From NCBI RefSeq assembly GCF_001194135.2, contig NC_068987.1, positions 20,940,462 to 20,975,021 of the forward strand: DNA of 34,560 nt. Direction: 5' to 3'. Positions 17,407 through 28,669 of this stretch are shown in pieces. The position numbers and the translations under genes are program-made. The DNA comes from Octopus bimaculoides. Lineage: Eukaryota. The notes under the pieces were generated by a model. That model ran no database searches. It was not told the origin of the DNA and saw only the letters and a list, made by a program, of their open reading frames with translations. The stretch's first letter is position 1. Each line of letters begins with the position of its first letter.

Positions 17407-20058
17407 TTTATAAATATATATATGTGTGTATAAGCTTTTATTTGTGCATACAGACATACTGACATACATTAAGCACGCATATTGTGTAAAGCAATTTTCA
17501 ACTAGTTGGCTCCAGCACGGAAGCAAAGCAGTAGCTAAGTGTTTGTGCGTGTTATGAATTGTCCCATTGTTTATTTTTAAAAGACTGACACCAACCACAC
17601 GGCAGTTACACACACACACACACACACACTCACGTACATACAATACACTCGAGTGCCTGCTTGATCCAAGGACTAGCTGGACGGAGCCTTACGCAACAGC
17701 TATTACTGTTACGGCTGACTTATTAGGAGTTACATCCATTTGAGGGTTTGATCCTGCGGTGGTGTGTTCGNNNNNNNNNNNNNNNNNNNNNNNNNNNNNN
17801 NNNNNNNNNNNNNNNNNNNNNNNNNNNNNNNNNNNNNNNNNNNNNNNNNNNNNNNNNNNNNNNNNNNNNNNNNNNNNNNNNNNNNNNNNNNNNNNNNNNN
17901 NNNNNNNNNNNNNNNNNNNNNNNNNNNNNNNNNNNNNNNNNNNNNNNNNNNNNNNNNNNNNNNNNNNNNNNNNNNNNNNNNNNNNNNNNNNNNNNNNNNN
18001 NNNNNNNNNNNNNNNNNNNNNNNNNNNNNNNNNNNNNNNNNNNNNNNNNNNNNNNNNNNNNNNNNNNNNNNNNNNNNNNNNNNNNNNNNNNNNNNNNNNN
18101 NNNNNNNNNNNNNNNNNNNNNNNNNNNNNNNNNNNNNNNNNNNNNNNNNNNNNNNNNNNNNNNNNNNNNNNNNNNNNNNNNNNNNNNNNNNNNNNNNNNN
18201 NNNNNNNNNNNNNNNNNNNNNNNNNNNNNNNNNNNNNNNNNNNNNNNNNNNNNNNNNNNNNNNNNNNNNNNNNNNNNNNNNNNNNNNNNNNNNNNNNNNN
18301 NNNNNNNNNNNNNNNNNNNNNNNNNNNNNNNNNNNNNNNNNNNNNNNNNNNNNNNNNNNNNNNNNNNNNNNNNNNNNNNNNNNNNNNNNNNNNNNNNNNN
18401 NNNNNNNNNNNNNNNNNNNNNNNNNNNNNNNNNNNNNNNNNNNNNNNNNNNNNNNNNNNNNNNNNNNNNNNNNNNNNNNNNNNNNNNNNNNNNNNNNNNN
18501 NNNNNNNNNNNNNNNNNNNNNNNNNNNNNNNNNNNNNNNNNNNNNNNNNNNNNNNNNNNNNNNNNNNNNNNNNNNNNNNNNNNNNNNNNNNNNNNNNNNN
18601 ATTTTCTCTCGTGTGTGTAGCTTTGAGGAAAAAAACTACTTGATTTCCAATCCTGAATGTCAAGAAATTATCTCAGCTTCGCTTTTAGGGAATCGCTATC
18701 AATTAATATTGTTTTTTTTTGGGGGGGGGGTCTCCTCCAACTAAGAGGCAAACTTCAAGTAACGAAGGAATTTTTTTGTTTTTTTTTTGTACGCGTTATT
18801 CGTCACTGGCGCACCGGTTGTCGGCATACCTTATCTGTGTTGTCTCCATTAAGACCATTGACCCGTTTGGGTGAATTTTTTTCCCTTTAACTCCATTAAA
18901 GTACCTACTTATAATATATATATATACATACATATGTGGCACCAACACATTTTTTTTAAACATCGCTGTCGCCTTTTCTCCCACATTTTATTCCTAATAT
19001 TTAAATGACTGAGCACACACACACAGGCGCGCGCCTTTTTCCACTCTAAAATTACATACATACATACATTGCGTGTCTCTCTCACACATACACACACACA
19101 CGTGTGTTTGTTGTTCAGTTCACGTGAACCAACGTTTGAATTATACATACATTGCATGCATACATATTACTTACCCACGCAACTATTATACATATTATAC
19201 ATACCCGACTTCAACTACATTTGTACACACCTAGAAATGATTTTTTTTTTCTTTTTTCTTATCTGGAGAATAATAAGTAGGAACATGTGGGTGTGTATGT
19301 ATGTTATAGTGTGTGTCTAGTTACATAAAACACACCTTTTTCTCTCGTCAAGGAGCGGTGGGTTTCAAAAAGAATAACCGTTTCCGGATTTGTCACACAC
19401 ATACATACACACGTACGAGGTCTATGCACACACGCATGCGTGAGTGTGTGTGTGTGTGTGTGTGTGCGTATAAATAACCCTTTACCAAACTATAACTTTT
19501 TATGTCTTACAGTAACTTCAAATACACACACTAATTGCTCAACTCGCCGGCCGACCTCTTCCAGAGCGCCTCTCTTTCTCTCTCTCTCTCTCTCTCACGC
19601 ACACACATTGAAATCAGATGATAAACCCTGTACGTGGTTATTCAGGCTATTAGAAATAGCAGTCAGGTTTCTATCTTCATTTAATAGGAACATGAAAACA
19701 TTTGAGAAGGGAAAGCTGAATTCTGTGTTCAAATCCTTTNNNNNNNNNNNNNNNNNNNNNNNNNNNNNNNNNNNNNNNNNNNNNNNNNNNNNNNNNNNNN
19801 NNNNNNNNNNNNNNNNNNNNNNNNNNNNNNNNNNNNNNNNNNNNNNNNNNNNNNNNNNNNNNNNNNNNNNNNNNNNNNNNNNNNNNNNNNNNNNNNNNNN
19901 NNNNNNNNNNNNNNNNNNNNNNNNNNNNNNNNNNNNNNNNNNNNNNNNNNNNNNNNNNNNNNNNNNNNNNNNNNNNNNNNNNNNNNNNNNNNNNNNNNNN
20001 NNNNNNNNNNNNNNNNNNNNNNNNNNNNNNNNNNNNNNNNNNNTTTTTGTTATTGCAG

Positions 20059-21310
20059 GTGGAACCGGATTTAGAACAATACTTGGTGTCACCAACACAG
20101 AGCTCACCAGCCTTCAGGAAGCGCCAACGTCGTGACAGCGCATCAGTAGTGGGTGAATTCTTCAACGATGATGGTGAACTGAAAGGTGGCCTCTTATACA
20201 GTAACTCGAACAACCTTCGTATCGGTTTAATGAACTGTAACAGCGTTTATAATAACATGGCCAACCAGAATGGCGTAGAGCTTCACCGTGGTAACAGGTT
20301 AATGGTGATGAATTCAGTCAATATGAACGGTTTTAAGACCCAGTTGGTGCATCAGGCTATTACCAACAATGGTGGTAGCAATATGGGCAGCAACGGTCAC
20401 TTGCCGTCAATAGAGGACGGTCGTAAAGAGCTGGACTGGGACGAGTACTCATCAAATATCAAATTGGAACCAGATAACTTTGACATCGATTCTATAGGGG
20501 GTATGACCAATGTTGATTACATAAATTCGATTGACCAGCAAGACCTGGATTTGAACCAGGAGAACTGCAAGGCCTTGTGGGACGACATACGTCTGGGAAT
20601 GCACATGGTCACTTCTCAGGACACTTCTCAGGACACTATGGCCGGATTAACTAATCGTATCAAGAGTGAACCTATTGATACTGAGTGGGACAAGCCCGCC
20701 TGTCAGTACACCTCATCGATTTTGCTCAACAATACCGGTAACAACCAGAACAACATTATTAACAATAACAGTAATAGCAACCTTGGCAACAATGGTGTTA
20801 ACATGCTTACTGCTTGTAAATTTGAGCCGGTTCGGACAGCATGTGCTATAGAATCGAAGCCGAACATAAATGAGGCCGGCGGGCATCACCGGACTAAAGT
20901 GGGTAAACTTCAATCATCTCTTATGTCGATGGGCTACGCCACACAACTTCCTGCTCATCCCCACCACCAGAATCTCACCTTCTTGTCCTCACCAAATTCC
21001 TCTTCATCACCTTCCTCATCAGCTCTATCCAACTCCTCCTCTTCCTCATCGACGGGTGGCCCCCTGTTTCCGACCCCACCCAATTCACTGCCCGCCAGCC
21101 CCGTCCAGGAAGGCTCATTCCGACGCACACCACCGCCGCCGTATCCAGGCAACCCGCGTCACTTTATGAACTCCGTACTGTCAGTTCCCCCTGTGAGGAC
21201 AGTAAACAAAAAACAACCGGTGACACATCCTGGATGCTCAACCATAAAGTACAACAGAAAAAACAACCCTGAGTTGGAGAAAAGACGAGTTCATTTCTGT
21301 GATTTTCAAA
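20059..21310 (+). CDS. KLF5: KLF5-like Kruppel-like factor, large coding exon 2 (transactivation region to start of zinc finger 1)
   Basis: Acceptor ttattgcag|GTG (phase 0) and donor CAAA|gtaagt (phase 1) bound an open frame (ORF 20047-21330). The peptide has DLEQYL..RRDSASVVGEFF (vertebrate KLF5, recalled: EMEKYL..RRDSASVVDQFF) and KYNRKNNPELEKRRVHFCDF (KLF5, recalled: RYNRRSNPDLEKRRIHYCDY). Confidence 0.95.
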
Positions 21311-22016: not shown

Positions 22017-22076
22017 ATTGCCGTAAAGCGTACACGAAAAGCTCTCACCTGAAGGCTCATCAGCGAATCCATACAG
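22017..22076 (+). CDS. KLF5: KLF5-like exon 3 (60 nt, zinc finger 1: NCRKAYTKSSHLKAHQRIHTG)
   Basis: ctctttcag|AT ... ACAG|gtatgt. Phase 1 at both ends, matching the neighbouring exons; canonical KLF finger-1 sequence. Confidence 0.97.
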
Positions 22077-22965: not shown

Positions 22966-23153
22966 GAGAAAAACCTTATCTTTGTACGTTTCCTTCCTGC
23001 CAGTGGCGCTTTGCTCGCTCCGACGAACTCACCAGGCACATACGAAAACACACCGGTGCCAAGCCATTCAAGTGCAAAGTCTGTGAGCGATGCTTTGCAC
23101 GTTCTGATCACTTGGCGCTGCACATGAAACGCCATGAACCCAAGAACAAATGA
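22966..23153 (+). CDS. KLF5: KLF5-like terminal coding exon (fingers 2 and 3: [62 protein letters not shown])
   Basis: tttactttcag|GA acceptor; KLF signatures [14 protein letters not shown] and [12 protein letters not shown]; TGA at 23151-23153. Confidence 0.97.
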
Positions 23154-24060
23154 ACCGAAGGTTTAGAATTTTGTTCTACCATGCACACCGTGAAGGATTT
23201 CGGAGACGACAATAGTAACAGAAGCGGGGCATGGCTGAAAACACGCTCTTTCCTCGCCTCTTCTTGTGTTCGTCACCCTTGTGAAACGGGCCAGGCATGT
23301 GGTAGTTTGCTTGCACAGGACAGGGTCCTTCAAACCCTTCGAAGAGTGGGGCTAGATGAAACCCACTGTCTTGATGCACCAATTGCTGTGCCGCGAAACC
23401 TCTGGTGCTGACATGAGCTTTGTGATTGGAGTGTGAAAGATTTATTATTTTCCCCTCAATTTTTGCAACTAATTTTTTTTTTTTTTAACTATTAAAAAAA
23501 AAATACATTTTTACACACACCATAAAAAAAAAAAAAGAACAATGAAAGTTGGAAAATTTTTAAAGAAATAAAACTTTATACAGAAATATATTGTACTGTG
23601 GAGTATTAATGGCTAGAAAAACCACTTTTTTTTCTCTCTTTTTAAATTTAAAAAAAAAAATTTTTTTTTTTTTTTTTACAACGTATAGCCCATCTCCACC
23701 CCCAGAAAAAAAAAACTCACCATCACCACCTCACTGTTATATTTCTTAAACTCAGACCTCTCCTCAAATATACATTTAGAGGCTTACACTCATACATACA
23801 CACATTACATAATTACATAGAAAACCCCATAGTGTGTTGGATTCATCAATTCACCAAAAACAGACTATGAATTATATATTGTTTTACAAATTCTTTTATT
23901 AACGACCAAACACACTAATTTCTCAAAGACATTCAGTAATGTGTTATTTGTTCATATTGATCATCATAATAATAATGATAATAATAATTATTATTATTAC
24001 AATTATATACTGTCAATTTAACATTTAAAAAAATAATAATAATAAAAGTGGACAACTGTC
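23154..24060 (+). other. Probable KLF 3' UTR with poly(A) signals
   Basis: A/U-rich with long homopolymers after about 23440; AATAAA at 23567-23572 and 24041-24046, the second followed by T-rich sequence. Confidence 0.55.
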
Positions 24061-27466: not shown

Positions 27467-28669
27467 GAAGGTAGTTTTTGTGTGTGGCAAATGCTCAGGG
27501 GCCATAAACAATGAAAATGTGCTGAAAACAGCTTCCGTCACATGTCAGGGGGAAAATCTACAGGTAGTTGATAGCTTCCGTTACCTAGGTGACCAAGTCA
27601 GTAGCGGGGGTTGATGCTCTGAAAATGTAGCTACTAGAGTAAGGATAGCCTGGGCAGAGTTCAGAGAGCTCCTATCTCAGCTGGTGACAAAGGGCCTCTC
27701 GCTCAGAGTAAAAGGTAGATTGTATGATGCATGTGTGCGAACAGCTATGCTACAGGGCAGTGACTGCTGAGGATATGCATAAGCTTAAAAGGAATGAAGT
27801 CAGTATGCTCCGCTGGATGTGTAATGTCAGTGTGCATACACAACAGAGTGTAAGCGCCCTGAGAGAAAAGTTGGGCATAAGAAGCATCAGATGCGGTGTG
27901 CAAGAGAGACGACTGCGCTGGTATGGTCATGTGTTGTGAATGGATGAGGACAGCTGTGTGAAAAAGTGTCACACCCTAGCAGTTGAGGGAACCTGTGGAA
28001 GAGGTAGACCTAGGATGAGGTGGTGAAGCACAACCTTCGAACATTGGGCCTCACCGAGGCAATGACAAGTGACCGAGACCTTTGGAGATATGCTGTGCTT
28101 GAGAAGACTAGGCAAGCGAAGTGAGACCATAACTGTGGCCTATACCAGTGCTGTATAACCAGCCCATTTAAGAGTACCCTTCATTCATTGGACAATAAAC
28201 TATGCTTGCGAAGACCTGTTGAGGCAAGTGAAATCGCTGTCGTGGCCAACGACAGTACCGCCTGATTGGCACCTGTGCCAGTGGAACGTTAAAAGCACCA
28301 TTCGAGCATGATTGTTACCAGGGTCGCTAACTGGCTCCCATGCTGTGCCACTGGCATGTGAAAAAATAAGCACCATTCAAGCGTGGTCATTGCCAGTGCT
28401 GCCAGACTGGCTCCTGTGCAGGTGGTATGTAAAAAGCACCATTTGAGCGTGGCTGATGTCAGTACCGCCTGACTGGCCCTCATGCCAGTGGCACGTAAAA
28501 GCACCCACTACACTCTCGGAGTGGTTGGTGTTAGGAATGGCATCCAGCTATAGAAACTTTGCCAGATCAGATTGGAGACTGGTGCAGCCTTCTGGCTCAC
28601 CAGCCCTCAGTCAAACCATCCAACCCATGCCAGCATGGAAAGCGGACATTAAACGATGATGATGATGAT
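27467..28669 (+). mobile_element. 5'-truncated, disrupted RTE-clade LINE (RT C-terminal region plus 3' UTR)
   Basis: Translates as VVDSFRYLGDQVSSGG*CSENVATRVRIAWAEFRELL...ERRLRWYGHV...GRGRP, with stops and frameshifts. ORF end at 28124; 3' UTR with internal tandem repeats and a (GAT)n tail. Confidence 0.88.
28240..28510 (+). repeat. Imperfect tandem repeat (period about 65-75 bp) in the RTE 3' UTR
   Basis: aaaagcacc(a/c) recurs near 28290, 28367, 28433 and 28497, with a gactggc motif in each unit. Confidence 0.75.

Follow-up and report, generated by a model that had tools for sequence, protein, structure and literature searches.

The open frame that follows the UGA stop of a Krüppel-like factor gene in Octopus bimaculoides, together with a conserved hairpin in which this stop is embedded, suggests on the strength of sequence comparison that ribosomes sometimes pass the stop. 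The explanation we consider best, and would accept about as readily as doubt, is that a conserved UGA is read through at a low level and that the proximal 3'UTR thereby translated is under selection as RNA. The earlier note on this DNA had proposed a readthrough or editing-controlled, Cys-containing C-terminal extension of the factor; the open frame seen in octopods and bivalves, the in-frame indels of its core and the occurrence of UGA in all HEPK-ending orthologues speak for the readthrough part of this proposal, whereas editing by ADAR and a selected Cys peptide did not hold up. The features of the gene and of its stop within the window (the whole stretch of 34,560 nucleotides analysed here) are the following:

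20047-21310, 22017-22076 and 22966-23153, + strand: visible exons of the KLF5-like gene.
22966-23153, + strand: last coding exon of the KLF5-like gene (zinc fingers 2-3 by translation), ending at the TGA 23151-23153.
23151-23153, + strand: UGA stop, candidate leaky stop, next base A.
23154-23408, + strand: 85-codon frame-0 open frame, candidate readthrough extension, GC 0.51.
23181-23183, + strand: in-frame ATG (ACCATGC), start of the listed 76-aa ORF.
23409-23411, + strand: second in-frame stop, TGA.

Splicing within the window gives a protein that shares 100% of its residues with O. bimaculoides XP_014775021 and 98% with an O. sinensis protein carrying the annotation Krueppel-like factor 10; the spliced protein matches the Pfam families zf-C2H2 and zf-H2C2_2 and carries three C-terminal C2H2 zinc fingers. 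Names given to the mollusc orthologues vary (KLF5, KLF12, KLF10 and luna), and the nearest named matches outside molluscs are KLF5 and dar1-like proteins, so that the previous assignment as a KLF5 orthologue is reasonable and the host gene is, by these matches, a KLF5/dar1-like zinc-finger factor. All annotated isoforms of the gene share the C-terminus HEPKNK. In the last exon, the differences between Octopus and Argonauta number 3/0/23 by codon position (dN/dS 0.01), and synonymous sites are saturated at a dS of ∼1.3. The assembly is a draft with nine N runs across positions 1412-32524 of the window (for example 19740-20043); one of them adjoins the start of the large KLF exon, and the first ∼37 residues of the protein (MANSYFKV...) are not contiguous with this exon. 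A 465-aa protein from another octopod (P0126, contig L004, SRR11869384) was rejected as an isoform: it runs into intron 2 (...CDFQSKYLLS*), and the contig, which is either intron-retaining or genomic, is uninformative.

Retranslation returned the same positions for the stop, the 85-codon frame and the second stop as had been given before. The frame past the TGA reads TEGLEFCSTMHTVKDFG...PRNLWC, and the 76-aa ORF listed at 23181 is indeed its in-frame tail; this exact ORF has no record as a called gene product anywhere. The reported shift in composition is likewise real, as the GC content per 50 nt amounts to 0.52-0.56 in the extension and to 0.18-0.24 after ∼23450. The probability of 85 open codons arising by chance, previously put at ∼0.02, is 0.019 by local composition and by dinucleotide shuffles alike, a value that is weak evidence by itself given a scan across many genes. 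On the minus strand, frame -2 contains one stop in O. bimaculoides and none in the Mactra-like bivalve sequence introduced below; these minus-strand ORFs are not conserved and were set aside.

To place the open frame in its phylogenetic context, we compared six octopod loci from five species, including O. sinensis (L001), O. vulgaris (L005), Argonauta hians (L002 and L006) and a spliced RNA-seq contig from another octopod (L003, SRR3401912), with orthologues from gastropods and heterodont bivalves. The gastropods comprise two vetigastropods (Haliotis rufescens, L008, and a Haliotis-like transcript, L007), two caenogastropod transcripts (L012 and L013) and one heterobranch transcript (L014); the bivalves comprise three venerid-like transcripts (L009-L011) and a Mactra-like contig (L016). 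Since the bivalve orthologues were picked without knowledge of their 3'UTRs, they constitute an unbiased replicate. The C-terminal 167 aa, used as a query, recovered only short KLF fragments and no additional cephalopods, and no squid, cuttlefish or Nautilus orthologue was obtained.

The alignment of orthologues proposed earlier as a check gave a divided answer. The open stretch past the stop measures 85 codons in O. bimaculoides, O. sinensis and O. vulgaris, 74 in L003 and 80 in Argonauta, and 89, 100, 57 and 69 codons in the four heterodont bivalves, whereas in the five gastropods it ends after 2-26 codons (5, 5, 25, 26 and 2 open codons, respectively). Across the same spans in octopods and bivalves, the +1 and +2 frames hold 2-10 stops. 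Dinucleotide shuffling gave P values for the open frame of 0.019 in O. bimaculoides, 0.022 in Argonauta, 0.003 in both L009 and L010, 0.027 in L011 and 0.85 in Haliotis. When conserved bases were held fixed, the probability of an open frame was 0.13 for Argonauta and 0.085 for L010 given L009; the openness of the Argonauta frame, given its conserved bases, is thus modest evidence.

The stop itself is TGA in all six octopod loci, in the two vetigastropods, the two caenogastropods and the heterobranch, and in the four heterodont bivalves, and is invariant among all HEPK-ending orthologues. This conservation may have another cause, because the gastropods with short frames also keep UGA. Octopods and gastropods have A as the base following the stop, three bivalves have C and the fourth has G; the leaky context TGA-CT is found in L009, L010 and L016, and the UGA-A context of the octopus is not leaky.

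The distribution of indels, taken from frame-blind nucleotide alignments, separates the core of the open frame from its surroundings. Within the core all indels are multiples of three (9 and 3 nt in octopods; 3, 27, 6, 6 and 3 nt between L009 and L010), and those at or past the end of the frame are not kept to multiples of three (1, 2, 32, 39, 4, 17 and 28 nt). The contrast has a hypergeometric P of 0.002, or of 0.008 if the indels of 27, 6 and 6 nt are counted as one 39-nt duplication; L010 does show an apparent 39-nt in-frame tandem duplication relative to L009 (L010:1696-1995, LDLGARAGA... / LSLEAQVGA...). The frame ends 5-11 codons sooner in two octopods, in L003 after a 1-nt deletion that frameshifts the tail and in Argonauta through an earlier stop. 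Among bivalves, sequence identity falls from 0.6-0.8 within the frame to 0.3-0.5 near or after its end. Taken together, these comparisons show a pattern in which selection appears to have kept frame 0 open and in phase in both octopods and heterodont bivalves.

At the nucleotide level, three blocks stand out in the alignments:

23267-23325, + strand: deeply conserved nucleotide block in the extension (...GTTCGTCACCCTTGTGAAACGGGCCAGGCATGTGGTAGTTTGCTTGCACAGGACAGGG), with all three codon positions conserved in the alignments.
23386-23415, + strand: conserved block straddling the second stop (CTGTGCCGCGAAACCTCTGGTGCTGACATG), conserved in Argonauta and L003.
23430-23440, + strand: short conserved block past the open frame (AGTGTGAAAGA), at approximately the end of the GC-rich conserved zone.

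Relative to O. sinensis, the extension shows 0.031 substitutions per site and no indels, compared to 0.067 substitutions per site in introns, and there are no substitutions at all in 23409-23445. When ∼4 kb of downstream sequence and the upstream introns were compared between Octopus and Argonauta, the only conserved non-coding sequence was the stretch directly past the stop: the BLAST match to Argonauta extends from the exon through 23325, and the blocks in the extension are near-identical despite the saturated synonymous sites of the coding exon. In Argonauta and L003, the block at 23386-23415 lies beyond the in-frame stop or out of frame, and it is therefore conserved as RNA or DNA and not as peptide. 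Nucleotide conservation runs for ∼35 nt past the second stop, to ∼23445. These data show the stop-proximal RNA, including the hairpin described below, to be under strong nucleotide-level constraint. Positions 23404-23410 hold the motif UGGUGCU, which is invariant in all octopods including Argonauta and which we take to be a miR-29 seed match, to be regarded as a lead.

Constraint on the RNA was not matched by a comparable constraint on the encoded peptide. Differences in the extension are spread flat over the codon positions, both between Octopus and Argonauta (30/27/32 by position modulo 3, and 29/26/36 in a second count) and, by position modulo 3, between L009 and L010 (26/27/30). In ungapped nucleotide alignments, the frame-0 pN/pS is 0.87 for Octopus versus Argonauta, 0.80 versus L003 and 0.90 for L009 versus L010, all within the 0.39-1.15 spanned by the five control frames; of the 8 changes that separate the extensions of O. 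bimaculoides and O. sinensis, 7 are nonsynonymous and 1 is synonymous. Neither the codon positions nor the comparison of pN/pS with the five control frames thus revealed a protein-coding substitution signature. No candidate relative of the 85-aa extension was found among 5.8 billion proteins, and a search against 1.84 billion representatives gave two weak matches to unrelated tandem-repeat proteins, whose scores are inflated because each of them contributes 3-7 repeat matches. None of the predicted proteins in the protein databases searched carries the extension, Pfam assigned no domain to five extension peptides, and AlphaFold produced no confident fold (mean pLDDT 37). As most of the Cys residues are not conserved, as pN/pS equals that of control frames and as homologues were not found, the functional Cys-containing peptide suggested previously finds no support here; judged by its substitutions, the added peptide is without sign of selection as a protein. 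Long-range pairing of the conserved blocks predicted by RNAalifold was also rejected, given an unfavourable covariation term and many pairs that break in Argonauta.

These observations bring forward the main rival to readthrough, namely a purely non-coding proximal 3'UTR in which the hairpin and the blocks form a regulatory module, with sites for RNA-binding proteins or microRNAs that act on mRNA stability or translation, and in which the frame owes its openness to chance and to conserved sequence that is rich in GC and poor in stops. We regard this as a real possibility, if one that falls short of being probable. It accounts well for the flat distribution of substitutions and for frame-0 pN/pS values like those of control frames, for conserved blocks that continue past the second stop and are out of frame in two lineages, and for gastropod proximal 3'UTRs that are GC-rich, conserved and structured yet offer only 2-26 open codons; some minus-strand frames are nearly open too, and the feature was selected for its long open frame in the first place. 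What it leaves unexplained is that the core indels are all multiples of three and the flanking ones are not, and that nine sequences from two classes lack stops in frame 0 but not in the +1 and +2 frames; the drop of bivalve conservation near the end of the frame also sits poorly with it.

The structure around the stop is the following:

23143-23177, + strand: hairpin with the stop in its 5' arm; stems of 8 bp (outer) and 6 bp (inner), GAA loop, bulge of 4 nt on the 3' side.

The hairpin folds as originally described, with AGAACAAA paired to UUUGUUCU and UGAACC to GGUUUA around the GAA loop and a GAAU bulge, giving 14 bp in total. Its minimum free energy is -9.7 kcal/mol (z = -3.46), none of 200 shuffled sequences folded as well, and the structure was retained when folded in contexts of 161 and 84 nt. 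When the coding part was fixed and the 60 downstream bases were shuffled, none of 300 sequences paired the last three codons and the stop as strongly. In four octopod sequences, all 14 pairs are invariant and the only changes affect the loop (GAA/GAC), the bulge (GAAU/GACU) and the base just 3' of the stem. With every pair invariant, the octopod sequences show no covariation, which had been suggested as a test. A stop-containing hairpin reaches significance in octopods only; L009 is a borderline case (P = 0.027), and the other sequences have none. The Mactra-like bivalve L016 shares the sequence GGTTTAGAATTT with the 3' arm in the same frame (P ∼0.02), and the minimum free energy fold of its stop region has the same two-stem shape with a 4-nt bulge, with weak ensemble support.

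Relative to the stop, the hairpin spans -8 to +24. As the stop lies in the 5' arm, the hairpin must be melted by the time the stop reaches the A site, and it therefore cannot be a classical roadblock starting ∼9 nt downstream, as in the Drosophila dfr element, where a structure is located near +9 and its spacing is critical (PMC13170385). A search for structure starting ∼8-9 nt past the stop gave no significant fold from +4 onward (z = +0.34). In the two Haliotis-like sequences (L007:1556-1575 and the matching part of L008), an identical 8-bp hairpin, CCGGUGUG-CGCA-CGCACCGG, lies ∼29-48 nt past the stop, in a GC-rich conserved proximal 3'UTR that has an in-frame stop after only 5 codons. From these comparisons, a structured and conserved stop-proximal 3'UTR seems to be general to this KLF gene family.

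The position of the stop within a helix had raised the possibility of stop recoding, in which ADAR would convert the hairpin-embedded A of the UGA (23153) to inosine, so that the stop would be read as Trp and an extended KLF made. A23153 is paired within a conserved helix, as this requires, and STOP to W stop-loss events are recognised in coleoid editing catalogues (PMC8382921). However, its 5' neighbour is G, the least favoured base, found in only 8% of one validated subset of squid editing sites, and its 3' neighbour is A and not the enriched G (PMC4384741). With 14 bp and a 4-nt bulge the helix is short, UGA is still read in the RNA-derived contig L003 (a weak test, as it is one contig from a related octopod), and no predicted protein reads through. 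Bivalves, moreover, share the open-frame pattern and, to our knowledge, lack heavy recoding. On account of the disfavoured target, the short bulged helix, the retained UGA and the bivalve frames, we consider editing of this stop very improbable.

Translation of the frame could also begin beyond the stop, either at the AUG at 23181, as an independent downstream ORF, or after splicing to the conserved TTTAG (23162-23166) as an alternative acceptor, which would join phase-1 upstream exons to frame 0. The ACCATGC surrounding the AUG would serve reasonably as start context and is shared by the Octopus species and L003, but the start codon itself, on which the original suggestion depended, is not conserved: it is ATA in Argonauta, and the L009 extension lacks any in-frame Met. 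Nor does the exact 76-aa ORF appear as a called gene. The TTTAG, for its part, is in the right phase and recurs in all four bivalve 3'UTRs, in three of them in the same phase; it is, however, not preceded by a polypyrimidine tract, all recovered transcripts are colinear across the stop, and every annotated isoform retains the HEPKNK ending. An origin of the frame in a separate start or splice variant is in our estimation improbable. Decoding of the UGA as selenocysteine would fit its invariance among molluscan orthologues, but neither a SECIS element nor any other Rfam family was detected in the window and nine orthologue loci, no redox motif surrounds the UGA, and we know of no KLF factor described as a selenoprotein; this reading is scarcely credible.

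Returning to low-level readthrough, we propose that the ancestral UGA is probably leaky and that a minority of ribosomes would decode it with a near-cognate tRNA, after which translation would continue for ∼66-85 codons through the GC-rich proximal 3'UTR. Both the translation of the open frame and a modulation of termination by the hairpin are inferred; if the hairpin acts, it may do so through refolding of its freed 3' arm or through protein binding. The added peptide would then be a disordered tail that is free to vary, or the passage of the ribosome itself may be what matters. An extended version of the latter idea, which we hold to be unlikely, is an ancient module of UGA readthrough common to bivalves and cephalopods, in which selection would keep ribosomes passing through RNA elements of the 3'UTR and the hairpin that hides the stop would serve as a switch. 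Passing ribosomes may, for example, strip bound repressors or decay factors from these elements. Such a module would explain how an open, in-phase frame can coincide with a pN/pS of ∼1 and with conservation at every codon position.

Among known systems, the octopus gene most invites comparison with the readthrough genes of Drosophila and Anopheles (dfr/vvl, hdc and kelch, with many transcription factors among them), with which it shares a conserved UGA, a long frame with in-frame indels, raised GC, nucleotide conservation and predicted structure at the stop, and a regulatory host gene. In Drosophila, programmed readthrough is marked by UGA stops, elevated GC, conservation that peaks between ∼-25 and +75 nt, and structured RNA near the stop (bioRxiv 10.64898/2026.06.10.731275). 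Unlike the insect candidates, which are defined by positive PhyloCSF, the octopus extension is without an amino-acid-level coding signature; its +4 base is A and not C, and its hairpin contains the stop (-8 to +24) instead of starting from ∼+9. The host is, in addition, a mollusc, and Pancrustacea are the sole group for which readthrough has been inferred to be abundant, a handful of cases being known from other animals (PMC5100048). Searches of the literature and supplements for readthrough of dar1, luna or KLF genes found nothing.

Stop-loss A-to-I editing in coleoids concerns the same animals, and here too the stop lies in a helix and its loss would give a Trp-containing C-terminal extension. 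The documented coleoid example, however, edits the middle A of UAG (UAG to UGG), whereas in the octopus KLF gene editing would have to hit the third base of UGA, next to an unfavourable 5' G and within a short stem, and UGA is retained in RNA of a related species. Mammalian genes such as VDR, LDHB, AGO1 and VEGFA, with UGA-CUAG or a downstream element, provide rare and gene-specific cases from outside the insects, in which readthrough can depend on elements immediately 3' of the stop; the UGA-CU of bivalve orthologues resembles them. The octopus gene differs in its UGA-ACC, in its much longer extension and in a peptide that is not conserved.

As a further lead, 3'UTR stem-loops can bind regulatory proteins, as triloop decay elements do. 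The octopus hairpin is similar in being short and invariant, in having a loop of 3 nt and in lying where the 3'UTR of a transcription-factor mRNA begins; it is dissimilar in that its 5' arm is coding and includes the stop, that its GAA/GAC loop fits no consensus we can name, and that it has no Rfam match.

If real, readthrough of this KLF gene would occur in a phylum for which next to no such case has been described, the octopus-clam candidate would extend conserved readthrough to Lophotrochozoa, and a conserved KLF regulator would exist as a C-terminally extended isoform. As the frame is clearly maintained and the peptide unconstrained, PhyloCSF-based methods would miss a case of this kind. 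For cephalopods, ordinary decoding would be the likelier route to such an extension than the well-known A-to-I editing.

Outside the KLF gene, ARAGORN detected no tRNA in the window. Downstream of the gene, a cluster of related units of ∼70-150 nt at 24905-25930 matches many sites of the O. sinensis locus on both strands and represents a dispersed or tandem repeat family. A repeat of ∼155 nt at 28509-28669 ends in a (GAT)n run and is probably a SINE-like element common to octopods; the final 8.3 kb of the examined Argonauta locus contain at least 8 copies of it, distributed over both strands.
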